Shown piece after piece: positions 22,601 to 46,704 of a stretch of 64,000 bases of DNA. Within the stretch, counting starts at the first letter, position 1. The number at the start of each line of letters is the position of its first letter. The notes under the pieces are model-generated. The model did no database searches. It was not told the origin of the DNA and was given only the letters and a program-made list of their open reading frames with translations. Location of the stretch: positions 1 through 64,000 of IMG/VR virus record IMGVR_UViG_3300049048_000052. One strand, written 5' to 3'. The position numbers and the translations under genes were made by a program.

Positions 22601-25600
22601 TCGAGCAGCTTAGGAAGGAGTACGGACAATATACTGAGGAACTACAAGTCCTCATAAGAGATAAGACAGTATCAGCTGATAGACATGAGGTCAAGGTCAT
22701 AATGACTAAGCTGGCTACTGTACAGGGTCAACTTTTAGAGCTGGCTAGATATTACCAACTGTTTGAGGATAAACCTGCCTCGGTTGGTATATCTAATGCA
22801 GTAGTAGGGGCCATGAATAATCCTAGATTTGGATTCTTTGTGCCCTACATGGAACCTATCATGTCTGAACATGGCGTCATCCTTAAGGTAGATAAGACTA
22901 GAGGTTTCTATAGCTTTATGCCATCTGGAGATGACATAAGACTAATGGGGGCCCAGTTTGGTAATTATATAGACCGTATAGTTCAAGCAACTATAGTGCT
23001 GCAATCAGGCTTTGCTCCTGGAGGACCCCTAGATGATATGTTTACTCGCATGTCTAAGATTAGGGGAAGTACCCATATAGCTATGAGTAATGAAGAATGG
23101 CAGCATCTGGATAGATTCTATAAGACAGCCCTTGAGATGCCTGCCCTATTAGCTGATGCTGCCTCAGGTACTAGGTTACAAAGAGCAACTGGTGCTGCCA
23201 TACCCTTTAGAGGTGGAGTGAGTACCCCTGCGGCCTCTGGTTTAGTACCTCCTGAAATGGTGGTGCTTGCTAGTGAGACATTAGCTAAACATGGCCTTAG
23301 AGTATCTGAGACTAAATGGAGAATGTTAGAGGATACTGATGCAGAGATGTCCAGAACTCATAGCACTCTCCAGAGTCTTGCTTATGAGTCTATGTCTCAG
23401 GCCGATAAGAACATAATAGAGAATAAGAGAAAGTTCCTAACAGGTCAGAGATTCGCATTAACTGAGGGTTTATCTGAACAGGGTACCAAGGGTCTACTAG
23501 ATAGGGCCCTAAAGGAAAGCCGTGAGCTAGCAGAAGACTATAGCAATGCGATGACCTTTACTGACCTGAAAGAAAGACAGAGACATCTAGGTAAGGTCTT
23601 TGGTAGGGCCGATCGTATGGCTAGACGTTTCAGCACTACTGTCTATGATCTGAATAAGAGAGGGGACTCCTTCGCTCAGCTGGCCGCCATCAGTGAGATG
23701 GAAATATGGAAGTCGCAGGCTAGAATATCTAGTCTAGAGGCACAGAACCAGGTAACTCCATTATCAAGTAAGGCTGCTGAAATACTAGATGCTGAAAGGA
23801 ATCAGCTCCGTATGTTTAAGGAGCTACCCTTCTATGTAACCAACTTTACCTTGGGTAGTGCTAACTCTGCCAGGAAAACTATGGAGGTTAGCCACCTAGC
23901 ACTTGAGGGTAAGCTAAGAGGTAATATTGTTAGAAGCATAATGTCTGCTGATATTACTAAGGAGATATTCGAGCTGGATGCAGATCACAGGACAGACTTC
24001 CTTGATTATAAGTTAACTACTCTAATAGATCATCTGGAGACTGCTAATGCTAAGAGGGATAATCCTGGTCCTCATGTGAAAGAAAGTGTTAGAGCTATGA
24101 GGAGTAGCCGTCTAGGAGGTGAGGCGGATTATAATAATCGTTTAGCTAGTAGGCTCGTAGATATTAGGGATAGGGTTAGAAGGGGTGGTACTAAGACGGC
24201 TGATGTCCTGGCTGAGATCAATGCTGCTTATGCTATGTATGACGTAAGTGGCGTATCATCTGCTATAGGCTTCCGTTCTCCTCCCTTTGGTTCTACTGAG
24301 CCCCAATTACAGATACTAGATGTCCTAAGGGATATAGCGGTAGTGAATGAGTATGCCCAAGGTATTGATGGGGGTAGTGGTAGATTAATCCAATACAGTG
24401 GGGCTGATGAGAGAAATGCATCATTGACCCTACTAAGTCCTATATCTATCCTAACTATGAACTTGGGTGACTTTGATGGTGACCCTTATACATTCATATT
24501 CTCTGAGCTACAAGGGTTAGAGCATAAGGTGATGGAGAAGAAGGATAATATTAAGATGCTCCAGTTTAGAAGGTCTAAGTGGAGTAAGGAACTATCACGC
24601 TTAGAACCAGATACCTTGGATTACGAAGATCTGAAGACTAGGGTTGATAATACTGAGAAACAGATCCTAAAGAATGAGGAGGAGATACCAAGGATCAGAT
24701 TAAAGATTAAGGAGATGGATGAACATCTACAAAGAGATATTATAGATAAGGGTGTGGCCCATAAACAGGTCGCGGCCTATATGGGTATCAATGCTAAATA
24801 CTTATTAACTGAGAGTCAGGGTGGTTATCTGGCTGACTCTGATAAATTAGATGCTAATGTCTTGTTCACCTTTATTGAACAGGGTAGAGGTTTGTATCCT
24901 GGTATAGATGATAAATATAAGAGTATCGATACACTCTACAAAGCCTTAGATCGACTCATAGAACCTACCTCCATGAGTGGGCCTATGAACCTTAATATGC
25001 ACCTATCTAGTATAGAAGCCCTAAAGAGTAGGGCCGCTGAGCTAGCTCAGGATATGAGTGATAACAGTGGTGGGGTATACGAACGTATTATCAATAACAA
25101 TGAGGTAGCTAGCGCGGTATTTGCGGAGTTACAGAACTTTGTTAATACTTATGAGGATTCAACCTCAGTTGAGATTGAGGACTACAAGTCAGGCTTAGCA
25201 GATCAGACTGTCAGCATGTACTATAAGATGCTTGGCACTAATGAGTTCCAGAAGATGATGAAGAGGGCTGGGGGAACTCAGATGGAGCTCTCCACGTATG
25301 ACATGCTAACAAAGGTCTTGGGTAAGGCGGGTGGTGATATCCTTGGTAAGACCTATAACTCTATAGTAGGTACTCTATTCGCTGATAGTCCTATGTTGGC
25401 AGTGGGTCATGTACTGACTAGGAGTGATGAGGTTAGCTCTGGGGTTGAGCAATATATAGATAATCTTATAAATACAGGTAAGTTAAGCGGAGATGAATGG
25501 TCTACCGGGGCCGACTTTATAGAGAATATAAAGACTAGTATGTCTAATGCAGAGCAGCTACAGGGATTCATGAAAGATATCCAGCAGCTACTCAGAGATA

Positions 25601-31661: not shown

Positions 31662-31721
31662 TAGGTGTCATAAGAAAAGGCCTATATGGCCCTTTTCTTA
31701 TGTTTATAGAGGAATACTCTC

Positions 31722-31877
31722 ATGGCTACTCACATCCGTTTCTGCCTGTACGCATTGGTGATTGTGTATAGTACACCTGTGGCTCTGGTCCGTGTGTACT
31801 ATACACACACCTGCTTGGTACAGGTCCAAGTACAAGAATACATCTGCCAAGAGGTAGATGAAGATATGCCTTATTAA
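31722..31877 (+). CDS. Small hydrophobic protein, 51 aa
   Basis: MATHIRFCLYALVIVYSTPVALVRV... with GAGGA SD, between two modules. Confidence 0.55.
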   Translation: MATHIRFCLYALVIVYSTPVALVRVYYTHTCLVQVQVQEYICQEVDEDMPY

Positions 31878-31946
31878 CCCCTCCTAGGACAAAGGGCTCT
31901 CCACAGGGCCCTTTTCTTGTACCTTTTGTCCTAGGAGGGCAAGAAT

Positions 31947-32162
31947 ATGTTTAAGTTTCCTGGTAAGTCTGATAAGTCTTCTCAGTTCAAAGAGGACATG
32001 GTCAAGGTGACCATGGCTGCCGAATTGGCCAACTTAGAGGGGCAGGCAGGGGAGGATTACCTCTTGTTCTGTACTCCAGAGCCTGAGGTTACCTCCGCTG
32101 ATCACCTGCTTGATGCAGGTGCTCCGCCTGCTAAACCTACCGGGTGGAATCCCATAGTCTAG
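31947..32162 (+). CDS. Hypothetical early protein
   Basis: AGGAGG SD, module-flanked. Confidence 0.65.
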   Translation: MFKFPGKSDKSSQFKEDMVKVTMAAELANLEGQAGEDYLLFCTPEPEVTSADHLLDAGAPPAKPTGWNPIV

Positions 32163-32225
32163 GTTAAGTAACAAAAGGGTCAGCAATGGCCCTTTTGTTA
32201 TCTTTAGTCCTAGGAGGACATCACA

Positions 32226-32504
32226 ATGGGTTACATTATCTCTTTGTTCCTTGGTGCTCTGTTGGGTGGTGGGTCTGCTGCTAGCGTTCTCATCATCCGT
32301 CATCGTGCTTCTATGGAACGTATGGGTCTTATGGTAGCGGATACCCGTGCTCAGCTCCGCGCTGAGATCAAATACCGGGGTCTCCTGGTAGAAGAGTCTC
32401 GACACTATAAGCAGTTGGAATACCTTGTGGATAAGCATCTAAATGATGCTGACTCCACTAAGGAGGACCTACATGATGCTTATCGTGAGCGTCTGGGTCT
32501 CTAA
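32226..32504 (+). CDS. N-terminally anchored coiled-coil protein
   Basis: MGYIISLFLGALLGGG.. hydrophobic start, similar to the start of 33057. Confidence 0.65.
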   Translation: MGYIISLFLGALLGGGSAASVLIIRHRASMERMGLMVADTRAQLRAEIKYRGLLVEESRHYKQLEYLVDKHLNDADSTKEDLHDAYRERLGL

Positions 32505-32654
32505 TTAAACTAAAAGGGCCTTCATTGGCCCTTTCTTTATCTTAAATAGCAACAATAAGGGGCTTGTTCCCTTTGAGCTATTCCCTAGGAACATTAACAC
32601 AAAGATAGGCCTAATGGCCTTTTTCTTAGTTGTTAGTCCTAGGAGGACACAGTT

Positions 32655-32993
32655 ATGCCTACGACCTACCTGACCGTAGCTCGCCTTTGCTCTTGGTATC
32701 ATCTCGCCTACCTCCTTGAGGAGCGGGAACAGATCAAGAGTGAGATTGATACAATCAATGGACTCTATAAGAGTCTACATTGTGTTAATGCCCGTAAGGC
32801 GGGTAAGCGATATCAGAGGGAAGTACACCATACTCTGCGCATTGTGGATCGTAAGATCCGCCGTGAGTTAGAAGAATTGGAGTGCTTCTTACTCCACGGT
32901 CGGCTACCAGCACCGCCACCAAAAGGTGTGAATGTGCTGGGTGCTATGAGATTATATATGGATCAGTGTGTAAGCACCTCCGTTAATCCATAG
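32655..32993 (+). CDS. Hypothetical early protein
   Basis: SD, module-flanked. Confidence 0.65.
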   Translation: MPTTYLTVARLCSWYHLAYLLEEREQIKSEIDTINGLYKSLHCVNARKAGKRYQREVHHTLRIVDRKIRRELEELECFLLHGRLPAPPPKGVNVLGAMRLYMDQCVSTSVNP

Positions 32994-33056
32994 TAGATAA
33001 CAAGAGAGGGCCTTCATCGGCCCTTTTCTTGTTCTATAGCCTAGGAGGCTAAGTAT

Positions 33057-33440
33057 ATGATCGGCTACATCATCTCCGCTCTATTGTCCGCTGGCACGGT
33101 GTTAGGGGTAACCCTAACAGTAATCCAGGCTAAGGATGATAAGATTGAGCAGCTACAAAGCATGCTCAATCATGAGGTAAAGATGAAAACCCTAGCTGAC
33201 CAGTTTGCTGAGGTTTGTCTCGATGGTCGAGATCAGGCCCAGCAATGCTCTGATAAGTACTGGGAAGATCTTCAGAGAGCTAACACTCTCCTGAAGAAGT
33301 ACCAGGAGCTTAACGGTGCTAATGGTCGGTTAGAGTCAGCCCTAAGAGAGCGTATTGCTCTCTTGGAGGAACAGCTAGAAACACTAAAGAGTATTCATGA
33401 ATTGGATACTCTCCATGTGAGAAGGCTGGACCTGAACTAA
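33057..33440 (+). CDS. N-terminally anchored coiled-coil protein
   Basis: MIGYIISALLSAG.. TM segment then heptads. Confidence 0.65.
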   Translation: MIGYIISALLSAGTVLGVTLTVIQAKDDKIEQLQSMLNHEVKMKTLADQFAEVCLDGRDQAQQCSDKYWEDLQRANTLLKKYQELNGANGRLESALRERIALLEEQLETLKSIHELDTLHVRRLDLN

Positions 33441-33541
33441 CACAATAAAAGGATTGTTGAGGTGGATCGCTACAGGCTATTCCACTCTCTACAGGAATAG
33501 GACCTCAATGGTCCTTTTATTGTTCTATTGGAGATACTCCT

Positions 33542-33733
33542 ATGTCTATTATTCACCATCCGCCGACTAACACTTTCTTTCTACATGCAAATGGACAGCT
33601 AACTCCACTAACATATCAGGATCTAATCCTGCTCTGTGTTATGTATGGGGTTAGTTGGATTCGGTTGCTCTCTATATATAAGTTGGCAGATGGATTAACT
33701 AATACTAGGTTGCGGTCCAAATACGGACTGTAA
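33542..33733 (+). CDS. Hypothetical early protein
   Basis: GGAG SD, module-flanked. Confidence 0.55.
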   Translation: MSIIHHPPTNTFFLHANGQLTPLTYQDLILLCVMYGVSWIRLLSIYKLADGLTNTRLRSKYGL

Positions 33734-33786
33734 TCTAGATGAGGGCCTAAGGGCCCTCTTATTAGTTGTTAGTCCTAGGAGGACCT

Positions 33787-34086
33787 ATGCAATATAAGAT
33801 CGCCAACATCGACCTGTTCCGCTCCATGACCTCTTGGATGTGCCTGCAGCATCCTTGGGATGGTGGTGAACTGGTGGAGCTGACTGGAGACGAGTTTGAT
33901 CTACTGGTCTACTCTCTAGATCTCACATGGGGTCTAAAAGAGGAGGATGATACCTTCGCTATCTTCCTGGAGGAGATAGATGAGATGATTGCATCTCAAG
34001 AGAAGTATCGCTCTTGTCCTAAGATGCGTGACCATATCCCAGAGCCTATCGACTGGGATGACCTGGATAGCTTGTTAGACTTCTAG
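33787..34086 (+). CDS. Acidic hypothetical early protein
   Basis: ATG after AGGAGG; ends DWDDLDSLLDF. Confidence 0.65.
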   Translation: MQYKIANIDLFRSMTSWMCLQHPWDGGELVELTGDEFDLLVYSLDLTWGLKEEDDTFAIFLEEIDEMIASQEKYRSCPKMRDHIPEPIDWDDLDSLLDF

Positions 34087-34147
34087 GTAGACTAATAATA
34101 GGGCTAGCAATGGCCCTATTATTAGTTGTTAACCCTAGGAGGGTAGT

Positions 34148-34321
34148 ATGGATTACGTTATGATCTGTGATGCTAACGGCATGGTAGATTCTATCCCGGA
34201 TGATGAGACACTTGATAAGACAGTTGATGCCTTGATCAACCCTCTCGAATGGGGTGAGGAGTCTGCCATTAACCGCAACACCATTGCGGCATACCCTCTA
34301 GTTATCAATACTGCTAACTAG
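34148..34321 (+). CDS. Small acidic protein, 57 aa (MDYVMICDANG...)
   Basis: Below the ORF-track cut-off; AGGAGG SD, module-flanked. Confidence 0.6.
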   Translation: MDYVMICDANGMVDSIPDDETLDKTVDALINPLEWGEESAINRNTIAAYPLVINTAN

Positions 34322-34382
34322 GATAAGACATAAGGAGGGCTTTGGCCCTTTTTATGTTCTATTGTCCTAGGAGGACTTCGAT

Positions 34383-34829
34383 ATGTCTACCAAACTCGCT
34401 AAGCTTTACAATGTACAAGCCAAGCTGATGGAGGAACTCAATGAGCTGCAAGGCTTCTTGGGTTGCTTCCATAGCGTGGCTATGCTGCGTAGGCTAGATG
34501 AGCGTGAGGATCTTCTTATAAGTCTGCTCAGGTTAGTCGAGGATAATATCCAGACTGAACTGAACATATTAGATAATATAGATAACCTTGCGGGTATCGG
34601 TGGCAAGGGCGGTAGGATCCACTTCTACGTTAAAGCAGAGGTGGATACTAACGTTGGTGAGATTGAGTATGATGGAGGATTCTTCGGAGACCTCTCTCAG
34701 GATCGTACTCAGTGGTCCCGCTCTAAGCAGGCTAGGCTTCATGGAGGACACAAGTGCCTCAAGAAGTGGAAGCGCTCAGGGCGCTATGCTCGCCGTATGA
34801 CTAACCGTATTGACAAGTACGCCTGTTAG
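34383..34829 (+). CDS. Hypothetical early protein
   Basis: SD, module-flanked. Confidence 0.65.
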   Translation: MSTKLAKLYNVQAKLMEELNELQGFLGCFHSVAMLRRLDEREDLLISLLRLVEDNIQTELNILDNIDNLAGIGGKGGRIHFYVKAEVDTNVGEIEYDGGFFGDLSQDRTQWSRSKQARLHGGHKCLKKWKRSGRYARRMTNRIDKYAC

Positions 34830-34943
34830 TCAACACTAATAAAAGGGTTGTAGTGATCACCACTACAGACTAAGTCCAATTCACCTCAGGACTAGGGCCA
34901 ACTATGGCCCTTTTATTAGTTTACAGTCTAGGAGAGTACTAGT

Positions 34944-35201
34944 ATGCATTGCGATATCCGGAGCTACCAGCAATTACTTTGGGAGAAATCCTATTGTCAT
35001 CGTAAGGCACTGCTATTTTTAAACCTCTGGCACTTTAGGCGTTATGAGGAGGATAGAATAGCGGCAATGAATTACTGCATAATGTGGGGTGAGACACTTT
35101 CTCATATGCAGGAGAAGGGTATGTTAGTAGAACCAACTGACATTGCGATTGATAGTTATAGTATCGATTGCCTGCTCCAATATTGGAGGGAGGAGCAATA
35201 A
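34944..35201 (+). CDS. Hypothetical early protein
   Basis: Module-flanked. Confidence 0.55.
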   Translation: MHCDIRSYQQLLWEKSYCHRKALLFLNLWHFRRYEEDRIAAMNYCIMWGETLSHMQEKGMLVEPTDIAIDSYSIDCLLQYWREEQ

Positions 35202-35281
35202 CTTAATAAAAGGGCTCTATCAGGGGCCCTTTTATTAAGGAGATAGCCCAATACACTACATTCAATGGGCTCAATCATGCC

Positions 35282-35899
35282 ATGTCTATTTCTACTTCTT
35301 TGACTATCAAAGGTGCAGTTGTCGTGGGTAGCGGTGCCCAAGCAGTAACCTTCCTACATCCTAAGACAGGATACCTAGTTAAGGTAGCTAGACCAATTGA
35401 GTGGATGGAGGATCAAGACATCCTAAGGGAGGCCTTACTACAGCTATTAGCCTCTGTAGATGGTATAGCACCTAAGGTATATACTTGGAACAATGATGCC
35501 TTAGAGATAGAGATGGAGTATGTACCCTATAAGTTCATTGAGACAGTGGACAGCTACCTGGCTAATGATAACTGGGGTGCCGTACGCTCTCTATATTATT
35601 GGGCAGGTGTACAACTAGGTAAACTCCATAAGTTGGGGCTAGTCCACCTAGATAGCCATCCTAAGAACTGGATGGTCAACGAGGAAGGTATGCCTATTCT
35701 CATTGACTATGGGTTTGCCCAGGAGACAGATGATGCAACTCTGAGGGTTGTAGATTACACTACCTGTCTCTATGGGGATACCACCAGAGGTAAAGCCTAT
35801 GTAGGTCTACTAGGTATAGTTAATGATTTGGACCAAGAGGATAAGGATGACCTAGAGCAATGTTTTGCTAAGGGTTACCTCTTAGGTAAGGAGGGTTAA
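35282..35899 (+). CDS. Protein kinase-like (Bud32/RIO-type minimal kinase)
   Basis: VGSGAQA Gly loop, VKV lysine, EMEYV hinge, HLDSHPKN catalytic loop, IDYG. Confidence 0.88.
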   Translation: MSISTSLTIKGAVVVGSGAQAVTFLHPKTGYLVKVARPIEWMEDQDILREALLQLLASVDGIAPKVYTWNNDALEIEMEYVPYKFIETVDSYLANDNWGAVRSLYYWAGVQLGKLHKLGLVHLDSHPKNWMVNEEGMPILIDYGFAQETDDATLRVVDYTTCLYGDTTRGKAYVGLLGIVNDLDQEDKDDLEQCFAKGYLLGKEG

Positions 35900-35988
35900 T
35901 GTAAGGGCCTTTGCATGTTACCGTAGGACACATGCTTAATGCCTGACCCTTTTATAATTAATCGTATATATACGAATGGAATGACCAT

Positions 35989-36168
35989 ATGAAGATAAGC
36001 AGACAGGTGTTGGCCTTCCTTAGGATCATTGAGGATCTAAGAGCTAAGGGTATGCCCAGCGAGACTCTAATCGGATATTGCCAACATAAACTGGATAATG
36101 GTGCCCTAACTGAATTAGAGGTAGCTGAGATAAAAGCAAAGATGAGGATGTTAAAAGTAGAGGCCTAA
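35989..36168 (+). CDS. Small hypothetical protein, 59 aa
   Basis: Open frame MKISRQVLAFLRIIEDLRAKG... ending in the next module hairpin. Confidence 0.45.
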   Translation: MKISRQVLAFLRIIEDLRAKGMPSETLIGYCQHKLDNGALTELEVAEIKAKMRMLKVEA

Positions 36169-36226
36169 GGGCCCTTTTCTTATCCTAGATGCAAACAATC
36201 ATCAGTTCTAGGGTAGGAGATGCACT

Positions 36227-37471
36227 ATGAAGACCCTCAAGCAAGCACTGCTCAATGTACTAAGCAATGGTGTTAGCACTCAACAGTGGCAGGCATTGGA
36301 GGACAGGGGTATGAAAGGTTACCAAGAATTTGACAATATCCAGGCCTTGTCTGATAAGGTATCGATCAAGCAGGTAGCAGACATGGTCAAGTTGATAGCC
36401 CAGTCCATTGCCCTAACTTACCTCGTTGAAGGTAAGGGACGTAACATAGTTATCCTGGGTAGAGATCTATGGCCAGTGTACCCACTCTTAAAGAAGAATC
36501 CTTATTGCAGAAATAAGGTGCAGTACTTCTTATTCTCCAGACTACAATTGGGGGATAAGGGTACTCGGGAGCAATGGCTTAAAGAGGTGCCCCCAAACTC
36601 CATTGTGATTGATACAGGGTATGCTGGCAGCATATTCAAGGCTATCAAAGAGTTTGATCCCACTATTGAAGGATGGCTTGTATCTAGTAGGTCCTCTGAG
36701 TTCAAACAAATTAATCTCTTCAAGGCTACGTTGGGTCACCAAGAGATAGTAGAGATTATTGAGAGGGCACCTAAGATCATTGGCCGCTGTGTGGCTATAG
36801 ATCAGGATGGTAAGGCTCGTTGTCCTCAGGATACTAGAGACAACGATGAAAATGGACAATTCTCTGTTAGAGAGGCAGCCCTATGGAATAGAGGGTTAAT
36901 GCTTCACTTAGGACTTGATGCTCGTTGGGGTACATTCAGTGGTATTGTGCCTGAGGATCGGGTGCCTAATAAGTTACATAGCCACTACCTTAAGGTTAGA
37001 TATCTAAGATCTAAGCTTACAGACGTTAATACTAGCCGGGCTCCATTCAGAGCTAAGCTAGATAAGAAATGGCTTGAGCAGTTCATCAGAGCATACCTTG
37101 TACCCTTAGGTATTAAGGACTGTAAGCTAGATGACAAAGCCCAAGCCTCCGTGGGTTATTACAGCTTCGTTGGTAATAATGGAGATGTATTCGACCTAGA
37201 CCTTTGCCCGATAGTAGGTTCCTGGCGACTAATGAAAGGGGGCCATACCACTATATTGAGGTGGAATGAGTTCGATGGTCTAGTGGTGAGGACTCGCCGC
37301 TTTGAAAGTAAGGGGTTCGCCAAAGCATGTGAAATGTTTGGATCCTTAGCTCAGTACACAAAGGAGCTCTACTATAATCCTGACTCCGCAGATGTATACG
37401 ATGATTATGGTCCATATGATGACACCTATGATTATAGTGAGGACTCGGGTGGTGGTAATCTAGAGTTCTAA
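36227..37471 (+). CDS. PRTase-like fold protein
   Basis: ILGRDLWP and IVIDTGYAGSI motifs resemble PRPP-binding-loop proteins. Confidence 0.45.
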   Translation: MKTLKQALLNVLSNGVSTQQWQALEDRGMKGYQEFDNIQALSDKVSIKQVADMVKLIAQSIALTYLVEGKGRNIVILGRDLWPVYPLLKKNPYCRNKVQYFLFSRLQLGDKGTREQWLKEVPPNSIVIDTGYAGSIFKAIKEFDPTIEGWLVSSRSSEFKQINLFKATLGHQEIVEIIERAPKIIGRCVAIDQDGKARCPQDTRDNDENGQFSVREAALWNRGLMLHLGLDARWGTFSGIVPEDRVPNKLHSHYLKVRYLRSKLTDVNTSRAPFRAKLDKKWLEQFIRAYLVPLGIKDCKLDDKAQASVGYYSFVGNNGDVFDLDLCPIVGSWRLMKGGHTTILRWNEFDGLVVRTRRFESKGFAKACEMFGSLAQYTKELYYNPDSADVYDDYGPYDDTYDYSEDSGGGNLEF

Positions 37472-37551
37472 GATGTGGTTAAGAGGGCCCAGTCGGGCCC
37501 TTTTCTTATCCTAGGTAATAATCTATCTGTCCTAGGTTAGGAGATACACTC

Positions 37552-38001
37552 ATGTCCGTATACTATATCATCAACCAAGACAACTCTATCGTTCTGTCTG
37601 TAGGCGACGATGCTCGTTGCGGTGCAATCTACGACCAACAACAAGCAGAAGAGATTGCTGAAGGTTGCTATGATTGGGAAGTTATCTCTTTCCCTGCCTC
37701 ACCTATTCAGGTAACAGAACGGAAGTGGAAGGTTAATATTGTCCTACAGTTTGTAGGCGGTACTGACCGCAAAGAGTTCTTTGTGATGGGTACTTCTGCT
37801 CTAACTGTAGCCGAGCAGTTCAAAACTATTATCTTGAGCCGCTACCATGATTACATCTGGGCTGAGCAAGCACGTACTGCTAAGCCCTACCTTATTGGGG
37901 ATACACATGCACATTTCGAATTGGATTCCAATCGTAAGACCATTACAGTCAATGAGTATAGGGAGCCAGAGTTTAAGTCTGTGCGTGATATCAACTTCTA
38001 G
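37552..38001 (+). CDS. Hypothetical early protein
   Basis: GGAGATACACT leader. Confidence 0.65.
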   Translation: MSVYYIINQDNSIVLSVGDDARCGAIYDQQQAEEIAEGCYDWEVISFPASPIQVTERKWKVNIVLQFVGGTDRKEFFVMGTSALTVAEQFKTIILSRYHDYIWAEQARTAKPYLIGDTHAHFELDSNRKTITVNEYREPEFKSVRDINF

Positions 38002-38083
38002 ATTTGAATGAGTAGATGAGGGCCAGATATCTGGCCCTTTTCTTGTCCTAACACTTACTTTACCTAGGACAAGGAGATACACT

Positions 38084-39277
38084 ATGTCTATTTGTCAGTC
38101 TTGCGTATTCTACTTCAATCAAGACAACCATGGAGTGAAAACAATGTTATGTTCAGGTGGTTTGACTCTAGGAGTAGACAGTTGCTCTGGCTACGATGAG
38201 GGGGAGCCTAATATTCAGGACTCTTACCTTAACAAAGAAGTGATGGCTACTCTCGTGAACCCTGAGCCATCTATCCCAATAAGAGTAGTATCGATATCTG
38301 AGTCTCAAGCTTATGAGCGCCTGCTCTTTAGTTATAATGAGAATGGTTATGAGTGGACACCTATAGATGTCTACAATAACCGCATCGTCATTATTACCAA
38401 CTGTGGTGCCTATGCATGGTACTACCGTAGAGGGGTGGATAATGTATGGACCTTCCAGAGTTATGATGGAGGGGACACATTTGATGCCGTAGGTGATACA
38501 CCTCTACTAGCCTATCTCAGATATGACGGCTTCTGGGACTTTGAGCATGTCAGCTTAGAAAGAGAAACCAATGCCATTGCTATCAGCAGTGAGTTTGCTA
38601 TTGTAGGGTCTCCAGTAGGTTATTTCATTGGGCACCTAGTATTACAAGAGAACCTTACGACCCGTATCTGGGGTCTCATGCCTAAGTGCTTCAGGACTGA
38701 AGATGATGCGTATCGATATCTCCTGGATGACGCGAACAATATTACTGTCAGCAAGATCGAACTGGGCAACTCCTGTGACTCAGACCTGGGTCACTGGGTT
38801 AGAGATCTCCAGTCAATGGAAGATATGGATGATGTAACCATATATCCTATGGGTGATCTATTGGTCGTAGCCAAATGCTTTGCGCCTGATATGGACTGGC
38901 ATGTCATGACTAAGGCCTTTCAGATCGTGTGGAGTATCTCTAACTTCTTCGAGGAGGGATACTACCTCAGCCTGGAGGAGGTAGTGACCATGTACAAACA
39001 AGAGTCCCTACTTATACCTTGTCCATCTGTAGATTGTCCAGAGTATATGAAGGAGTTAGGGACTCTGTTCCCTAACCTTGAGTTTACATTCGAGGATGTA
39101 ACTGGGGATGGTCAGATCTATGCTACTTACAGCACAGATGAGACTATATTCTCTATTACTTCTCATGAACCAGGGATGTACTATGCCAGATTACATACTC
39201 CTGACGGTAATGAGGATCTTGAGAGTGATAGTCTGACAACTATTGCTGAGCACTACCTTGCTTACTTTCTGAGTTAG
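38084..39277 (+). CDS. Acidic hypothetical protein with N-terminal Cys cluster
   Basis: MSICQSCVFY..C..C; GGAGATACACT leader. Confidence 0.65.
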   Translation: MSICQSCVFYFNQDNHGVKTMLCSGGLTLGVDSCSGYDEGEPNIQDSYLNKEVMATLVNPEPSIPIRVVSISESQAYERLLFSYNENGYEWTPIDVYNNRIVIITNCGAYAWYYRRGVDNVWTFQSYDGGDTFDAVGDTPLLAYLRYDGFWDFEHVSLERETNAIAISSEFAIVGSPVGYFIGHLVLQENLTTRIWGLMPKCFRTEDDAYRYLLDDANNITVSKIELGNSCDSDLGHWVRDLQSMEDMDDVTIYPMGDLLVVAKCFAPDMDWHVMTKAFQIVWSISNFFEEGYYLSLEEVVTMYKQESLLIPCPSVDCPEYMKELGTLFPNLEFTFEDVTGDGQIYATYSTDETIFSITSHEPGMYYARLHTPDGNEDLESDSLTTIAEHYLAYFLS

Positions 39278-39570
39278 CAAGGTGTCCTTAGTTAATCCCT
39301 GAGAACACAGGGCTAATGCCAACAGGGGGCCTTCGGGCCCTCTTATTATGTAATGAATATATACTTGCCCTTCTATTGAGTCATGGGGCTAATGGGGAGA
39401 TACATTCTCCCCTTCTTATTCTTATCTAAGTTATATATCTGTCCTTTGACTAGGGACATTATAGGGAGCACAACTCCCTTCCTTATTTTAATTGTTGTAT
39501 CTCCGTACGGCTCATAGGGCCCTTTTATTATCCTAGGCACTATTTCTAATCCTAGGTTAGGAGATACACT

Positions 39571-40122
39571 ATGTCTAACTGCATCAACTGTGTTCATTTC
39601 ATTGAGCGGGCTACTTCAACTGGTAATGTCTTAAGGATGTGTAGGGTTAATGCCACCTTACATGATATTAACTGCACTAAAAAGGTTACAGGACCAGTGA
39701 AACCCATAAAGGGCCCAAGTCAGAAAGCGCTAGCAGCTACTGTATTGGAGTCTCTTCTGGGTTGGAAGGGAAGTAGCCTAGCTGCCAATCCTGCATCTAC
39801 GGACTCTAAAGTTAAAAGTAGTAGTGAGGCTAGAGTCCTGGCTAAGAAGCAGTACTATGCTAGTAAGGCTATGACTTTTAATACCTTTGATAGTCTAGGC
39901 ACCTTTACCAAACTTCTAAAACCTATCTTCCGAAGTCTAGGTGGTGATTGGCAATGTGGCTGCAGCAAGGATGGTACTGGCTACTACGCTAGGGCTGGTA
40001 ATATAATCATCTCCTATACTATAGCTAGTTATCAACCATGGCTCTACCTAGTGGAGGGGAGCGGTATCGCTGAGTCTTTTGAGACTTTTATACAACTCAA
40101 GCAGCGTGTATTGGGTTACTAG
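39571..40122 (+). CDS. Hypothetical protein with N-terminal Cys cluster
   Basis: MSNCINCVHF..C..C, same pattern as 38084. Confidence 0.65.
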   Translation: MSNCINCVHFIERATSTGNVLRMCRVNATLHDINCTKKVTGPVKPIKGPSQKALAATVLESLLGWKGSSLAANPASTDSKVKSSSEARVLAKKQYYASKAMTFNTFDSLGTFTKLLKPIFRSLGGDWQCGCSKDGTGYYARAGNIIISYTIASYQPWLYLVEGSGIAESFETFIQLKQRVLGY

Positions 40123-40246
40123 TCCCTAAGTTGTAAGTGGGGCCCGAGAAGGCCCCACTTACAACTACTGTATCTCCTGGCCCATTGGCCCTTTTATTAT
40201 CCTAGGTAACACTTTACCTATCCTAGGTTAATGGAGATACACTATC

Positions 40247-40966
40247 ATGGCTAACAACTCTACCTCTTCCTCTATCGTTCGCGCATTCTCTGCTAAGTTG
40301 AACATCTGCCAACGTCGTGCTACGGGTGCTAAGGGCGGTAACCTGGGTACTGTTACCAAGGGCTACATCCGTACCTCTCCTGTTTCCACCTGGATTCAAT
40401 GGTCTCCTATGGAGGGCAACCTGTTCCTGGGTGAGCAAGAGGTAACCCCTCAGCAACTGCATGAACTGTTCCGTTTCCCTAATGGGGTACAGCTGATTTT
40501 CAAGCTTGATCTGAAGAATGTGACGCTCATGCAGGACGGGGCTGTTATCATGCCGCTTGGTTCTGATATTGAGGACCAGAAGGCCAATATGATTGATATG
40601 TTGGATGATACTAGCGTGCAGTCTATTACTGTGCGTTGGACATCTAAGCTTATCTTCAGCCGTAAGCAAGAGGCTTACATCGGGAGTGCTGGTGATCTCC
40701 GCTTGCCTCAGGTAGTTTACATTGAGCAGGCTACTATTGAGCTCAACTCTGAACGTGTAGAGATTGGAGGGGATGCTGTAGAGCATGTGGAACTCATTGA
40801 AGCTATCGCTGCCCTGCAATCTAAGAAGCCTACTCGTAAGGGTTTGGCACGTGTGCAGGAGCGTATGGTGAACATGGATCCAGGAGTTATTACTCCCTCT
40901 AACGTGAGCAGCTTTGCTGAAGGCATGCCTTCCGAATCCCCAGAGGACATCATGAATATGATGTAA
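40247..40966 (+). CDS. Hypothetical protein, paralogue A upstream of RNAP
   Basis: AKLNICQR..G.KGG..WIQW shared with 41030; ends EDIMNMM. Confidence 0.75.
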   Translation: MANNSTSSSIVRAFSAKLNICQRRATGAKGGNLGTVTKGYIRTSPVSTWIQWSPMEGNLFLGEQEVTPQQLHELFRFPNGVQLIFKLDLKNVTLMQDGAVIMPLGSDIEDQKANMIDMLDDTSVQSITVRWTSKLIFSRKQEAYIGSAGDLRLPQVVYIEQATIELNSERVEIGGDAVEHVELIEAIAALQSKKPTRKGLARVQERMVNMDPGVITPSNVSSFAEGMPSESPEDIMNMM

Positions 40967-41029
40967 TCCTTACTTAATAAAAGGGCCATATGGCCCTTTT
41001 ATTGTCCCGTACCTAGTTATTCAACGGGA

Positions 41030-41743
41030 TTGGAGATTCAAATGTACATTGCAACACTCAATATCTGTCAGCGTGGTAAATGGGGATTGAAGGGCGGCAA
41101 GCGTGCCGTCATCACTAATGGTGCCATTATGCGTGGTGAGCCTCGTTGGTGGATTCAGTTCATTCCCACTGATGGCTTCATCTATAAGGATGAGTATCTA
41201 ATCAGTCCTGTAACTGATTGGATGCATACGCTATTAGCTGATGATGAGCTGAGTCTTATGTTCCGGGTTGGTGCCGATAGCGCTGACTTTATTACCCCTG
41301 ATGGTAAGAAGCATATGCTATATAGTCGTGAGGACCAAGAGAACTTCATGCTTGAGGTTCTTGAGGATCCTAGCATCACGGCGATGCGTATCGAGTGGAA
41401 CTGTAAGCTGTTGTTCAATAGCAATACAGACATTACCACTAATGGTCATGAATCCATGGTGGCCGAGATCTGTGAGGCTACTGTATATCTTCTTGAGGCC
41501 ACTCGCTTTGAGAATGATAAGACTGAGGTAGCACCTGAGGAACTGGATGATGCGACTAAGCCATTCTTAGTTCCTAAGGGTGAATCCAAGGGTCTGTCTG
41601 GGGTACAGAATAATCTCAGTCGTGCTAAGCGTAAACGCGCCGAGAGAAAAGAGAGACACCGGGCAGTTAAGGCTGGTACGGTACTGGACGATGATATTGC
41701 TAGTGTAGCTGAGGCTGCAGAGAGCATCATCGATATGATGTAA
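41030..41743 (+). CDS. Hypothetical protein, paralogue B upstream of RNAP
   Basis: ATLNICQR..GLKGG..WIQF; ends ESIIDMM. Confidence 0.75.
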   Translation: MEIQMYIATLNICQRGKWGLKGGKRAVITNGAIMRGEPRWWIQFIPTDGFIYKDEYLISPVTDWMHTLLADDELSLMFRVGADSADFITPDGKKHMLYSREDQENFMLEVLEDPSITAMRIEWNCKLLFNSNTDITTNGHESMVAEICEATVYLLEATRFENDKTEVAPEELDDATKPFLVPKGESKGLSGVQNNLSRAKRKRAERKERHRAVKAGTVLDDDIASVAEAAESIIDMM

Positions 41744-41818
41744 TACCTATATACAAAATAGGACAATAAGGGGGCCATCGGCCCTTTTATTGTACACTCC
41801 CTTTATTGGAGAACCACT

Positions 41819-44800
41819 ATGTCTGCTATTGACTTCTCTCGTTTGACCGTGCCCGCTACTGCTAGCCAGGAACAGATCAGTGACCTGATCGATTGTCTGG
41901 GTGAGTTAGGTTACCAGGTGGTACCTGGACCTGACTTTAGAGTGGATGCGTCTGATGTCTTTATGCCCTTTAAGGGTGTGGAGACGGATGACGTAGCCTT
42001 GCTGGCTTACGCTCTAAGTACAGTGCTCAGCGGTCTCGGTATTGGTCTGCCTGAAACGGCAGCTGATGAATACGAGGCTGCCGCTGATGTTGATGGCCTG
42101 GTCCAGTATGTCCGGGCTATGTTCGATAACCCTAGTCAAGAGGAAACAATGGAAGAAGTCATTGAAGTTCAGGATCCAACTCCCTCCGTTAAGGTTGTTG
42201 GTTCTACTAAGGAAAACTTGCTCCCTCCAATTGTGTGGGAGAATCGCCCCATCGCTGAGATGAATGATATCATCTGTCGCTCTATGGGCACCAACTGGGA
42301 TAAACCTCTACCTTCTTGGGTACGCCTTGCTACTGCCTTTACGCATATTGGCCGTACTATTCTACCTACTGAATGGTTAGAAGGGGGCCGTATCGACCGC
42401 AGTCATAACTATGTCCGTACTGATGGCCGTTCCATTCTGAAGGCTATGTACAAGTTGGGTGTACCTCTCGTTGGTACCTCTACCAAGGTTAAGTTCTCTG
42501 AAGGTCAACCCATTGAGACTGTGGAACCCTGCCGTTTCAATGTTACCTTCACCACTCGGGATAACACCTACTTCGTTATCCCTGAGATTGAATCTGTTGT
42601 GGATGAAATGCCTCCACTCTTTGATGCAGAGCGTATGTCTCATGGCATGGTTAATTATGTCCATGAGGTAGTAAGTGCACTGGATGATGAGACCCTCCTG
42701 CAATTCTGGGCTAAGTTCATTCCTAACTCTAGTCTCAATGGTCGTGAGCTCACCTTCAGCCCTAGCGGTGTCTCTCAATACACCAATGTAATTGTTCGCT
42801 TGCCTGAGGCTGAGGACGAGCTGATTAGTGTTAGTACTGGTCGCACTCGCTATGTCAATCCTGTAATGGATGTTAGTGGTATTGTTGTATCTGGCCGCAC
42901 CATCCTGACCATGATGCTCATGAGTCTCGTAAATGAGGCCGAGTATTTGATTACTCAATCACGTGTAGATGGATACCTGAACCTGCTCTCTAATATGTGG
43001 GTACCCGCTGAGAATTATGGGGCCTTCAAGAAGAGTGGTGAGGCCATCCATAAAATCTACAACAATAGGGAGCTCCCAGTGGGCATGTATTGCACTCTGG
43101 GTATCCGTTATCCCTTCATTCACTTAGTGAATGTTAGTGCTGCCGCTAATAACGGTATCACTTCCTCTCGTCATATGGTAGAGGAATTCATCAAGAAGGG
43201 TATTGCTGCACTGCCTCACAAATATGGCACCTTTGGCAAGGCTGTCGTATTTGGTGCAGGGGTAAACGCCATGGGTATGGCGATCGCCCGTAATGAATAT
43301 GGCAACTATGTTGTCAATAACCTGGAGACTGATGAAGCATGGCAGCGCATGATCATGCGTACTGTCCTGGATGCATCTAAGCCTTCCAAGTTCTTCAACC
43401 GTCCCTGGACGTTCTTTGGTTCTGTCTTTGCTGATGGTACTGAGGACTTCCCGCTTGAGAAGTCTAAGCTCCATATGATGACCTATCATCCTGTGGATAA
43501 GGAAGGTACCGAGTTTATCAATGAGGCGGTCTATGTTCGCGGTGTGCGTCGTAAGATCTGTTATACCAATAGCCTCCTGACTCATGGCTCTGGTGTTGCT
43601 TCTGTTAACCCCAGCCGCCAAGCCATCCGTTATTCCGTTGGTAAGTCTGAGGCTGATATGATTAATGATTACAGCATCCCTCCTACATTCCGTAAGGTAT
43701 TTGAGAAGGATGCTGAGACTCGTAATGGGGCAGGTATGAACTCTGACTGGCTGCAGATTGTAGCTGAGAAGCTTCAAGAGAAGGCTGATCGTATTGTCGA
43801 TGAGGCCAAGGCCACCGGTAAGGTATTTCATGATGGGGATGTCGTAATGACTCTCTTTGCTGATCTGCCTGATTATAAGCGTGATCTGGTTGTGGTTACT
43901 GCACCTAACCAGGATATCTATCTGGAACGTGCTGAAGTAGTACGTGTGGCAACTACTAATGCTGTACGTGTGCGCTTCTTTACTCGCTTTGAGGGTGAGG
44001 ATTATATCCTTAAGCTGCGGGGTCCCGGTGTTAAGTTCACTACTCAGTTGGATGATATCACTTTCCTGAGTGGTTTCAGTGATTGGGATCTGTTCCTCAA
44101 CATGGAGTGCACTAAGGGCGAACTCGCTCAACTGTACATGTATGCTGAGGCCGTCGGTGAATGTATCTACTATCCTGATACCGGTTTATTGGAGCATGTT
44201 GCTACTGGTAAGGTAGAAGATTTGAAGGATGTTGGCGCTCCTTTCTACAAGTGGGTTGCAGACAATACCGCTAAGGAGGTTATTGAGCGTAAGGTATCCA
44301 AGGAGTACTTGGAATACATTGCCGAATGCCATCCTGGTCTGGTTGCCTTTACTGAGGACGATGTTACCAATAAGTCTGATATTGTTGTCAAGGCTGATCT
44401 GGGTCATGACTATCTTGTCCATGAGACCATCCAATGTCTTGTGGGTGATATGCTCTTCATGGTGGAGATCTCCACTCCTCGTGAGAATACTAGCCCTGCT
44501 GGTCTTACTCTGGAGCAGCTTGCCCTACTCGAGGGTGTCTATGCTGACTTGGCACTGGCATTCATTCACCTGTCTAAGGAGTTCCACTCCGGTATCCAAG
44601 GTATGGCTAAGCTGATCTTGGGTAAGTTGCCCTCTCAGGATCAAGTACCCTACCTTAACCTCATTGAGGCTGGGGATGTAGTAAACCGCGTCTCCCGGAC
44701 CGATAAGGGTATCCTCATGGGACGTCGCCTGATGCAGGCGCTTAAGAAGGAGTTTCCTAAGGGCTTTGTGCTCTTCAGCACTGACAGCTTTGGAGTCTAC

Positions 44801-46660
44801 TATGACTTTGATTCCATGTCCCGCTTTATGGCATTCTCTGGTGAGAGTGGTGCCTCTGGGGCTGCTGCTGATATCTCTCAGCTCTTTCATCAACTGGGTA
44901 TGCCTGCTGATAAGCGTTCTGCTCGTTACTGGCCTGCATCTATCCATGCACTTAACGTCAGTGCTCAGAATCTGATCACCGCTTGGGTTACCCAGATGGG
45001 TGGTGAGGAAGGTAAGGGCAGCAAGGTGCTCTCCCGTTTAGGCCGTACTGCTAAGATTGGCAGCAACCTGAAAGTTAAGACTGTCCATGTTATGGGGGGT
45101 GTTAGCGAAGGTAAGTTCATCACTCGTCCTGCTTATATGCAGGGACTTCCTGTGATGGGCTTGAATCCTAATTGTGCCAGTGTTAAGCGTCTGGGTATTA
45201 AGGCGGGTGATGTAGTCATGGCGGGTCGTACTCCTATGGGCTTCCCTGTCTTCTGCTATGCAGACGTACATCCTTGCTATGCTATTGCACATGGTTACCT
45301 CTTGGCTAACGTCTGGGCCTGGTGTAACGAGGGTGACGGTGATGGTGATCCTATGGCTATCTTCAATGTGACTGGTATCATTACTGAGGATAATCAGTGG
45401 CGTTACAATCGTAAGATTGAGCTGCGTGAGCTGAGCATCAAGGCGGCTGAGTCTGGTGACTTTACCAAGGCTAAGTCTTTAAGCACTCAAGCTGAATCTA
45501 TCAAGGCTCTGCCTCTGCCTACCTATGAGAAGATGGCTGCCCTGAATAAGGGTTATCTCTCTCTCGGTGGTTATGCTGCTATCTATGGTAGCCCTCGTAA
45601 GCATCCCTTTGCTGAGTTCTGTTCTCCTGCTGATAAGTGGTCTAAGAAGCTGCTTAATCTGGATGTGGATAAGATGATGCCTGGGCATTATCCTGCTGAC
45701 GAGAAGGCAATGAAGAAGGCTACTCGTAAGTCTCTGATCACTGATATCCCTGTGATGGACTATCTCAATGCCAATGATGCAGTAGCTAATCACTATCGTA
45801 TCAATGTTGGTATTGGCTACGGGGTTGCCTCTGCTCTGGCATTCCTGTTGGCGGATCGTCGTCGTAAGGCTATCATTGAAGCCAGTAAGAAGGCTATTGC
45901 TGAGGGCCATGATGTAGAGATCTACAATGGCGGTATGCAGCTGTATATTAATAGCGATGAGGCTGATAACTTCATCCGTCTTCAACTGGCTAAGAATGAG
46001 GAGCTGGTTAACCTTACCCGTGGTACGGTATTGGCCTGGCGTATGCTGTATGAAGGCTATGGTCTGGCTGGTGTCTCTGATGAGGCAACCATGGCATTCC
46101 GTATCCTCGATGTAGCGGCTCGTTCTAATGACCGGCGTATTGCTGTAGTTACTGTGGATGGTCAACCGCGCGTTGAGTATCCTAACTTCAAGCCTGAAGC
46201 AGGTACTGTGGCTACTCAGCCTGTGCTGAAGAATGGGGCTGCCTATCTAACTAGCTTCATCTTTGAGAAGTCTCCTGAGCTCCGTCATTCTATGCTCGGT
46301 GGGGTGAATGAGCTTATTCGTGCTCGCTCTCTGACGGTAGCCATCCGCGACATGGAACGTGGTCGTGAGCCTCGTACTATGCGCCATACCACCTTTTCTG
46401 ATGTGGTAATTGCAGGTGCGTCACGTCGTCTGGGTCAGGGTCAGTTTGGTGTGCAAGAGCAGACCGACTTCTCTGATGAGGGGGACAATGAAGCACACTC
46501 CATGTTTGAGCTGTTGGAAGGTATCCGTTGTGCTAATGGTGGTGCTTATCCCGTTCATAGCAACGTGGTTAAGTACTATCTGAGTATTGGTGCCTCCATC
46601 ATGTACAGCATGGAGATGCACGCTAAGACCAAGCGTGCTGAGATGAATCAGGGCTACTAA
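41819..46660 (+). CDS. Single-subunit two-barrel RNA polymerase (YonO/crAss-like, non-virion)
   Basis: GRTP (R1137), then CNEGDGDGDPMAIF (D1173-D1177) matching beta' RxP..NADFDGDQMAVH; K732..K739 in LKLRGPGVKF resembles the beta lysine pair. Confidence 0.85.
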   Translation: MSAIDFSRLTVPATASQEQISDLIDCLGELGYQVVPGPDFRVDASDVFMPFKGVETDDVALLAYALSTVLSGLGIGLPETAADEYEAAADVDGLVQYVRAMFDNPSQEETMEEVIEVQDPTPSVKVVGSTKENLLPPIVWENRPIAEMNDIICRSMGTNWDKPLPSWVRLATAFTHIGRTILPTEWLEGGRIDRSHNYVRTDGRSILKAMYKLGVPLVGTSTKVKFSEGQPIETVEPCRFNVTFTTRDNTYFVIPEIESVVDEMPPLFDAERMSHGMVNYVHEVVSALDDETLLQFWAKFIPNSSLNGRELTFSPSGVSQYTNVIVRLPEAEDELISVSTGRTRYVNPVMDVSGIVVSGRTILTMMLMSLVNEAEYLITQSRVDGYLNLLSNMWVPAENYGAFKKSGEAIHKIYNNRELPVGMYCTLGIRYPFIHLVNVSAAANNGITSSRHMVEEFIKKGIAALPHKYGTFGKAVVFGAGVNAMGMAIARNEYGNYVVNNLETDEAWQRMIMRTVLDASKPSKFFNRPWTFFGSVFADGTEDFPLEKSKLHMMTYHPVDKEGTEFINEAVYVRGVRRKICYTNSLLTHGSGVASVNPSRQAIRYSVGKSEADMINDYSIPPTFRKVFEKDAETRNGAGMNSDWLQIVAEKLQEKADRIVDEAKATGKVFHDGDVVMTLFADLPDYKRDLVVVTAPNQDIYLERAEVVRVATTNAVRVRFFTRFEGEDYILKLRGPGVKFTTQLDDITFLSGFSDWDLFLNMECTKGELAQLYMYAEAVGECIYYPDTGLLEHVATGKVEDLKDVGAPFYKWVADNTAKEVIERKVSKEYLEYIAECHPGLVAFTEDDVTNKSDIVVKADLGHDYLVHETIQCLVGDMLFMVEISTPRENTSPAGLTLEQLALLEGVYADLALAFIHLSKEFHSGIQGMAKLILGKLPSQDQVPYLNLIEAGDVVNRVSRTDKGILMGRRLMQALKKEFPKGFVLFSTDSFGVYYDFDSMSRFMAFSGESGASGAAADISQLFHQLGMPADKRSARYWPASIHALNVSAQNLITAWVTQMGGEEGKGSKVLSRLGRTAKIGSNLKVKTVHVMGGVSEGKFITRPAYMQGLPVMGLNPNCASVKRLGIKAGDVVMAGRTPMGFPVFCYADVHPCYAIAHGYLLANVWAWCNEGDGDGDPMAIFNVTGIITEDNQWRYNRKIELRELSIKAAESGDFTKAKSLSTQAESIKALPLPTYEKMAALNKGYLSLGGYAAIYGSPRKHPFAEFCSPADKWSKKLLNLDVDKMMPGHYPADEKAMKKATRKSLITDIPVMDYLNANDAVANHYRINVGIGYGVASALAFLLADRRRKAIIEASKKAIAEGHDVEIYNGGMQLYINSDEADNFIRLQLAKNEELVNLTRGTVLAWRMLYEGYGLAGVSDEATMAFRILDVAARSNDRRIAVVTVDGQPRVEYPNFKPEAGTVATQPVLKNGAAYLTSFIFEKSPELRHSMLGGVNELIRARSLTVAIRDMERGREPRTMRHTTFSDVVIAGASRRLGQGQFGVQEQTDFSDEGDNEAHSMFELLEGIRCANGGAYPVHSNVVKYYLSIGASIMYSMEMHAKTKRAEMNQGY

Positions 46661-46704
46661 TCTGATCTAGTAAGGGGGCCTACGGGCCCTTTTACTAGTG
46701 TTTG

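Follow-up and report, generated by a model that had tools for sequence, protein, structure and literature searches.

The window analysed here is a 64,000-nucleotide (nt) stretch of DNA, positions 1 to 64,000 of the IMG/VR virus record IMGVR_UViG_3300049048_000052. On its + strand, at 41819..46660, it carries an open reading frame (ORF) of 1613 residues, a homologue of gp064 of the cyanophage Ma-LMM01. We are highly confident that the encoded protein is a homologue of the two-barrel polymerases, with both barrels on a single chain, and we consider it probable that it serves as a phage transcriptase made after infection. A first-pass annotation of the same DNA went further and placed it, together with a 3717-residue protein, in a full, host-independent cascade of two polymerases; in this complete form the proposal appears doubtful to us. 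Since the protein has no significant match in Pfam, among PDB sequences or to a YonO profile, we regard it as representing a family of single-chain two-barrel polymerases that is new and deeply divergent and that lies outside the described families by sequence criteria.

The frame of 1613 codons is unbroken, from an ATG start with GGAG 8 nt upstream to a TAA stop, with no internal stop. Its main features are the following:

41819..46660, + strand: candidate single-chain two-barrel RNA polymerase ORF, 1613 residues, intact frame, homologue of Ma-LMM01 gp064
44012..44116, + strand: β-like barrel signature K732-L-R734-GPGV-K739 ... W756-DLFLN ... E763..K766-G, invariant in the family and aligned by hhalign
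45035..45373, + strand: β′-like barrel with LSRLGR...NLKVKT, P..Y...QGLP, GRTP and NEGDGDGDPMAIF, from family conservation and hhalign
45752..45901, + strand: candidate bridge helix of 50 residues (residues 1312-1361), from the AlphaFold secondary structure (H983-1032 of the model), with a near-invariant HY...V...Y

In two-barrel enzymes, an invariant R-x-P is found about 35 residues before the aspartate loop (R446/P448 in Rpb1; PMC2919709). The 1613-residue protein shows the same arrangement in its GRTPMG motif, where RTP occupies residues 1137-1139 and the invariant R1137 and P1139 are encoded at nt 45227-45235; the distance from the arginine to the first aspartate is 36 residues, compared with 35 in Escherichia coli β′ (rpoC). 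The D-x-D-x-D metal loop of a β′-type barrel is represented by DGDGD (residues 1173-1177, nt 45335-45349; D1173/D1175/D1177) within NEGDGDGDPMAIF, in register with NADFDGD of rpoC. Likewise, the two basic residues of the second barrel (K979/K987 in Rpb2) have counterparts in K732, R734 and K739 of KLRGPGVK (residues 732-739, nt 44012-44035), which is followed by WDLFLN at residues 756-761. The motifs on which the first-pass annotation was built, namely RTP, NEGDGDGDPMAIF and the β-like lysines, are all present where it had placed them. When the protein was shuffled 20000 times with its composition preserved, the pattern R.P.{25,50}D.DGD came up in 21 of the shuffled sequences (0.1%). The helix at residues 1312-1361 may be the bridge helix, as its predicted structure and its conservation suggest.

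These motifs are the conserved core of a large family. An exhaustive HMMER search returned 121 representative proteins at E ≤ 0.001, counted as clusters at 50% identity and 1250-3200 residues in length; 30 of them, at E ≤ 1e-30, are closer, and Ma-LMM01 gp064 is included in the family. An alignment of 40 family sequences with 23-54% identity shows no variation at K732, R734, K739, K766, E883, P1111, R1137, P1139 or D1173, and conservation of at least 90% at G1172, D1175, G1176 and D1177. Ma-LMM01 gp064 (1673 residues, 25% identical) retains every one of these positions. The second position of the aspartate loop varies, with DSDGD as the family consensus beside DTDGD, DADGD and DGDGD, and YonO of phage SPbeta has DNDGD; the glycine of DGDGD, which had been singled out in the first-pass annotation, is therefore not special. 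Three members (P0051, P0056 and P0059, from loci L009 and L010) carry the same polymerase module, with NNGDSDGDP, at the C-terminus of proteins of ~2900-3200 residues; all three are encoded among small ORFs next to a kinase gene, and one has a NADAR domain.

For comparison with the E. coli enzyme, separate blocks of the family alignment were compared by hhalign with rpoC and rpoB in full length. For the β′ block, the top match is to rpoC residues 330-470 (E = 0.031), collinear over P.L...CGLP, NRAP and NADFDGD, and the two share GK.V..S..P.L...GLP, a motif of the first half of the β′ barrel. The β block matches best to rpoB residues 1027-1167 (E = 0.086): it is collinear with rpoB ~1060-1108, where K.RG.G.K of the family stands opposite GRHGNKG (within 1-2 residues) and WDI.LN opposite VDIVLNP.

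The predicted fold points in the same direction. An AlphaFold model of residues 330-1510, computed with the family alignment, has a mean predicted local distance difference test score (pLDDT) of 89.1 and a predicted template modelling score (pTM) of 0.88, and its secondary structure around the aspartate motif, strand-strand-helix-loop-strand, fits a barrel. In a Foldseek search of the PDB the best match was the Thermus β subunit (5d4c_M, E = 4.4e-3), and further top matches were to RNA polymerase II (7b7u_B), the poxvirus enzyme (7aoh_B), RNA polymerase III (7d58_B) and the enzymes of Pyrococcus (8rbo_B) and Sulfolobus (7ok0_B). All of these are second-largest RNA polymerase subunits, matched with a probability of 0.92-0.99 over 350-570 columns. 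A structure search of BFVD matched the MaMV-DC homologue (2.7e-40), poxvirus RPO132 (2.1e-3) and β subunits of giant viruses. The same database search also returned an uncharacterised protein of 798 residues from the Acinetobacter phage vB_AbaM_ME3 (A0A172Q0S6; E = 3.8e-7 over 834 columns); ME3 is a jumbo phage listed in a published survey among phages without an RNA polymerase of their own (PMC7824862).

Small double-psi-barrel proteins, such as the p97 N domain, formylmethanofuran dehydrogenase subunit D and TorA, are mixed among the Foldseek matches. Barrels of this kind are widespread in unrelated enzymes (p97-N, molybdoenzymes, RlpA), and the statistical links from the 1613-residue protein to known polymerases are all marginal, as would be expected if it were not a polymerase at all, used its barrels for another purpose and carried the motifs by chance. 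We consider this highly improbable: K.R....K, WDI.LN, GKV.TS..P.L...GLP, R.P and D.DGD succeed one another as expected, both in order and in spacing, and no positions of the family are more conserved, the rarity of the motif pair in shuffled sequences speaks against coincidence, and the top structural matches extend over long stretches of RNA polymerase subunits rather than isolated barrels.

Embedding searches place the protein close to single-chain polymerases. Of the 100 clusters nearest to it in the ESM Atlas, 67 are in the set that carries the Pfam RNA-dependent RNA polymerase (RdRP) family PF05183 (score 0.94; 194/256 shared features), and when residues 440-1000 were used alone, a segment outside the DxDGD motif, 85 of 100 named neighbours carried PF05183. 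Motifs, family conservation, fold match and embedding neighbours together bear out the earlier claim of a two-barrel polymerase on a single chain, at the level of a homologue whose catalytic signature is intact. That these neighbours are labelled RdRP raises the question of whether such a polymerase could have another job, as an RNA-dependent RNA polymerase, a primase-like replication enzyme or a PolD-like DNA polymerase. QDE-1 is active on both DNA and RNA templates (PMC9508822), PolD shares the two barrels (PMC10770324), and in Ma-LMM01 the replication machinery has been assigned with uncertainty only (PMC4889955). Nevertheless, all characterised phage members (YonO, gp66, gp64 and gp96) are DNA-dependent transcriptases, the best structural matches are RNA polymerase subunits with no PolD in the top 50 Foldseek matches in the PDB, and the gene lies among early/middle regulatory-type genes rather than replication genes. 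We thus regard another job as unlikely.

Several results weigh against reading the protein as a phage transcriptase. Searches of Pfam, NCBIfam and PDB sequences with the protein and the family profile gave no informative match: Pfam had none at E ≤ 1 for the 1613-residue protein, 34 family members likewise had none at E ≤ 0.01 (PF05183 included), and neither Pfam nor NCBIfam found RNA_pol_Rpb1 or RNA_pol_Rpb2 domains in this protein, which has both barrels on one chain. Its sole family match is PHROG 30979, of unknown function. Comparison by hhalign with YonO alone and with 104 YonO homologues was not significant (E = 0.29 for the homologues), and the full-length alignment slips out of register between the barrels; sub-blocks reached E = 0.055 and 0.14 against the YonO family, with the motifs aligned locally and the β-like block in register with R-LPWV-K-G...WDI of YonO. 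The E-values of the E. coli blocks, at only 0.03-0.09, are marginal, yet both matches land on the catalytic loci of 1400-residue proteins. Foldseek E-values against the PDB are modest (4e-3 to 5e-2) and global TM-scores low (0.13-0.15), the latter being expected because the query is large and multidomain. Second-largest polymerase subunits and double-psi barrels came out on top in the structure search with the model, whereas the solved structures of QDE-1 and of gp64 and gp66, the latter two named for comparison in the first-pass annotation, were absent from the top 50 PDB matches. An equivalent of D837 of Rpb2, the fourth conserved acidic residue, which belongs to the β-like part of two-barrel enzymes, was not identified in the protein; as candidates, the 40-sequence alignment has several conserved acidic residues upstream, among them D467 and an aspartate three residues before K521. 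Finally, the published transcriptome of Ma-LMM01 ascribes all three of its expression classes to host σ70-like promoters, from BPROM predictions alone (PMC5780444).

If the phage transcriptase reading is correct, the 1613-residue protein would be catalytically competent as a single-chain two-barrel polymerase, its most probable identity being that of a DNA-dependent RNA polymerase synthesised after infection. In its chain, the β-like barrel (K732/R734/K739) comes first and the β′-like barrel (R1137, P1139, D1173/D1175/D1177) second; the three aspartates would hold the catalytic Mg2+, and contact with the incoming nucleoside triphosphate would fall to the basic residues of the β-like barrel. 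A first wave of transcription would come from the host polymerase or from an injected enzyme, after which the 1613-residue enzyme would take over part of the phage genome (middle and/or late genes); we infer its template, product, promoter specificity and timing. That it would be made in the cell and take over transcription is suggested because its gene is the last unit of a non-structural block closed by hairpins and because gp064 belongs to a middle class. The attributes 'transcribes late genes' and 'host-independent', taken from the cascade of the first-pass annotation, would hold by analogy only, and its label 'non-virion' would stand on gene context, namely the non-structural neighbours and the middle-class transcript of gp064.

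The gene context is laid out by the following features:

1889-4384, − strand: tail sheath
9158-10486, − strand: major head protein
14133-15629, − strand: portal
16633..27786, + strand: ORF of 3717 residues, homologue of Ma-LMM01 gp080, candidate virion polymerase
31688..46697, + strand: block of ~20 single-gene units, each closed by GGGCC-loop-GGCCC TTTTWTTR; the polymerase gene is the last unit
35282-35899: kinase-like gene within the hairpin block
40247..41743, + strand: two paralogous ORFs of ~240 residues (40247-40966 and 41030-41743) directly upstream of the polymerase gene
41770..41792, + strand: GC hairpin and T tract (GGGGGCCATCGGCCC TTTTATTG), at a distance of 37 nt from the preceding stop and 39 nt from the polymerase ATG that follows
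46667..46698, + strand: hairpin with a 14-base-pair stem and T tract directly after the TAA, last copy of the cassette family
51043-51501: gp061-like gene, downstream of the polymerase gene

The head protein, the 1613-residue protein and the 3717-residue protein each match the same ten records among 50,697 phage genomes (by tblastn for the 1613-residue protein), namely Ma-LMM01, MaMV phages of Microcystis and the Microcoleus phage My-WqHQDG. Because myovirus genes are present and the only database relatives are cyanophages of the Ma-LMM01 group, the earlier assignment to a probable cyanophage myovirus is reasonable.

The 3717-residue protein is the candidate for an injected polymerase. It contains GFRSPPFG (nt 24274-24285) and NLGDFDGDPYT (DFDGD at nt 24469-24483), and R2548, P2551 and D2613/D2615/G2616/D2617 are invariant in 17 homologues with 21-43% identity. 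Near its N-terminus, two conserved HxK motifs (residues 339-341 and 654-656) coincide with a weak PLD-like Pfam match, and in BFVD the homologue from Ma-LMM01 bears the label of a PLD phosphodiesterase domain protein; the motifs suggest that this protein, putatively ejected, has a module of the nuclease or phosphodiesterase kind. In the window, in the related loci L007 and L008 and in Ma-LMM01, its gene lies divergently beside the portal gene, and since it always adjoins portal and capsid genes, the protein fits a packaged one. Downstream of the giant gene, after a few intervening genes, the distant relatives L007 (23718-23987) and L008 (26041-26304) both encode a protein with a PAAR motif.

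The fold of this protein was not recovered. AlphaFold on residues 1950-3080 gave a mostly helical model (pLDDT 61.7, pTM 0.31) with the motif region below 50 and no barrel; Foldseek with this low-confidence model was uninformative, and an ESM search was weak (score 0.78). BLASTP found no similarity between the 1613- and 3717-residue proteins, and in hhalign the giant protein aligns with the 1613-residue family at the aspartate loops alone (E = 0.031). A second, injected polymerase, as claimed in the first-pass annotation, is thus plausible from the invariant RSPP and DFDGD motifs and the place beside the portal gene but unproven, as fold prediction gave no barrel.

The unconfirmed barrel also leaves room for a reversal of roles, in which the 1613-residue transcriptase itself would be packaged and injected and the giant would be something else, e.g. 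a PLD-nuclease ejection protein with a coincidental or other-metal DFDGD. The polymerase modules on the ~3000-residue proteins P0051, P0056 and P0059, a size typical of ejected proteins, would suit this, as would the expression class that gp064 and gp080 share. However, the neighbours of the 1613-residue gene and of its longer counterparts are small non-structural ORFs and a kinase gene, outside the structural module, the portal-side place is fixed for the 3717-residue gene and not for the 1613-residue gene, and RSPP and DFDGD are invariant across the giant homologues. We accordingly judge this reversal improbable.

Published expression data of Ma-LMM01 bear on the timing of the polymerase gene. 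The early class of this phage comprises gp054-gp063, directly downstream of gp064 (PMC5780444), and includes gp062, an annotated kinase. Class B5, which is termed middle, contains gp064 as well as gp080 (PMC5780444 Table S3), and the four successive log2 values of gp064 are 0, 1.58, 7.50 and 8.05 (PMC5780444). The 'early region' to which the first-pass annotation assigned the polymerase gene of the window therefore fits its neighbourhood, as the block holds homologues of Ma-LMM01 early genes (the gp062-like kinase and, further downstream, the gp061-like gene), but not the timing of the gene itself. A similar setting of small co-directional ORFans and a kinase gene is found around the polymerase genes of the relatives L002, L005 and L009.

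The block is marked by its hairpin cassettes. GGCCCTTTTWTTR, which comprises the 3′ hairpin arm and the T tract, has 22 copies in the window compared with 0.23 expected; all lie within 31688-46697, and 20 are on the + strand. They are positioned 25-70 nt downstream of a stop and 38-60 nt upstream of the start that comes next; TCCTAGG boxes and AGGAG come after many of them, the polymerase unit being without TCCTAGG boxes. With a T tract behind the hairpin on the coding strand, and a place 25-70 nt past each stop, the cassettes have the geometry of intrinsic terminators, which makes hairpin promoters in the style of phage N4, also considered, less likely. Terminator-like sites in the window number 44 compared with 12.2 +/- 4.0 expected. 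The uniformity of the cassette, GGGCC-loop-GGCCC followed by TTTTATTA, goes beyond the needs of an ordinary intrinsic terminator, and similar GGCC..GGCC CTTTTnTTAT hairpins occur upstream of the polymerase homologue in L002. Matches to σ70-like promoters are not enriched in the window (26 compared with 34.5 +/- 6.1 expected) and are depleted around the closest homologue, in L002 (6 compared with 18.2 +/- 4.3).

The two ORFs of ~240 residues upstream of the polymerase gene have three paralogous copies in L002, the closest relative (2096-2818, 3564-4325 and 10541-11269), which flank the polymerase homologue. They have no Pfam or PHROG match, and none were found in Ma-LMM01 or in loci other than L002. 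The cofactors that the first-pass annotation added to the cascade could be these paralogues; we infer this part from the two copies and their presence in that one relative.

Directly 3′ of the polymerase gene, at 46700-46880 on the + strand, there are four degenerate repeats of GCAGCGAAAG...GAAGGAGCG, which Tandem Repeats Finder did not report; the syntenic place in Ma-LMM01, between gp064 and the early genes, holds a 42-bp x 6.5 repeat array. Further downstream, ARAGORN found a transfer RNA (tRNA) with the anticodon CTA, of the amber suppressor type, at 50858-50929 on the + strand (Rfam tRNA, 37.4 bits), and two further tRNAs whose anticodon loops are unusual at 50941-51009 and 51519-51592. 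Recoding of TAG in the window was considered and rejected: TAG ends 23 of 49 ORFs, mostly with another stop close behind. TGA ends just one of the 49. Upstream of the tail-sheath gene region, at 676-968 on the − strand, lies a group I intron, which matches the Rfam model RF00028 over its full length (71.8 bits).

Taken together, a more far-reaching scenario can be drawn, which we put forward tentatively and think less probable than not. In it, cyanomyoviruses of the Ma-LMM01 type, among them the chief cultured phages of bloom-forming Microcystis, would run a largely host-independent programme of two polymerases: the giant PLD-bearing head or ejection protein with the DFDGD barrel would transcribe the hairpin block on entry, the last gene of the block would encode the second polymerase, of a hitherto unrecognised two-barrel family, for the rest of the genome, and the GGGCC-loop-GGCCC-TTTTATTA cassettes would be enzyme-specific signals, not ordinary terminators. 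The published view is that the Ma-LMM01 group is without an RNA polymerase and that its three expression classes all depend on host σ70 (PMC5780444, PMC9927357).

For toxic Microcystis blooms, Ma-LMM01 and its relatives serve as the reference phages. A phage transcriptase, if confirmed, would change the reading of the group's temporal programme and would bear on its unusual failure to shut down host transcription as well as on marker-gene data from blooms. The polymerase field, in turn, gains a large family that is too divergent for Pfam and profile searches; because it is nonetheless collinear with β and β′ at the active site, it is useful for understanding the relationship between single-chain and multisubunit enzymes. 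Both gp064 and gp080 are directly testable, since Ma-LMM01 is culturable.

Among known systems, YonO of SPbeta and the PF05183 family, which includes QDE-1, share with the 1613-residue protein the single chain and a β-like barrel before a β′-like barrel, the R-x-P, the D-x-D-G-D with its variable second position, and K/R...K followed by WDI in the first barrel. They are its nearest embedding neighbours, yet it has no PF05183 match and its profile-profile comparison remains at the E-value given above. YonO has 839 residues, about half the length of the protein described here, which has ~165 extra residues between the barrels and, unlike YonO, a long C-terminal helical region that may include the bridge helix. 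The order of the barrels is the same in crAss-like gp66 and P23-45 gp64. The multisubunit β/β′ (Rpb2/Rpb1) enzymes provide the best structural matches, and both barrels are collinear with E. coli rpoC and rpoB; unlike these enzymes, the 1613-residue protein is one polypeptide, with no α or ω partners evident. The 3717-residue protein may be compared with gp66, the virion polymerase of phi14:2, a crAss-like phage: both are very large with a lone DFDxD-type motif and proposed to be packaged and injected. The likeness is at the level of motifs, and the protein of the window differs in its N-terminal PLD-like HxK motifs and its myovirus context.

The closest parallel to the combination is the Thermus phage P23-45, in which a giant virion two-barrel polymerase fused to the tape measure transcribes the pre-early genes, among them that of a second polymerase consisting of a single chain, and in which a conserved 26-nt terminator motif marks the pre-early region (PMC10770324). 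The first-pass annotation knew of no described case of such a combination; as P23-45 already has the giant virion-fused and the single-chain non-virion enzyme, it is not unprecedented, and the authors of that study point out that many viruses have two such polymerases in their genomes (PMC10770324). With its non-virion gp64 and virion gp96, P23-45 resembles the phage described here in having an early-region gene for a single-chain two-barrel polymerase and a giant virion-type protein with DFDGD, and its early region with conserved terminator motifs is reminiscent of the hairpin block. The P23-45 programme, an injected enzyme followed by a polymerase made in the cell, is the likeness we propose. 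The two also differ: P23-45 is a siphovirus whose giant is the tape measure, whereas the phage of the window is a myovirus whose giant is PLD-like and encoded beside the portal gene; and in P23-45 gp64 transcribes early and middle genes, with the host enzyme responsible for the late ones. Sequence similarity to P23-45 gp64 or gp62 was not found, the tblastn search of phage records matching solely the Ma-LMM01 group including the Microcoleus phage, and in the literature searched we found no mention of Ma-LMM01 or Microcystis in this connection. A two-polymerase programme thus appears to be undescribed for cyanophages, and what appears to be new is the family itself, its presence in cyanomyoviruses said to lack an RNA polymerase, and the PLD-bearing giant beside the portal gene.

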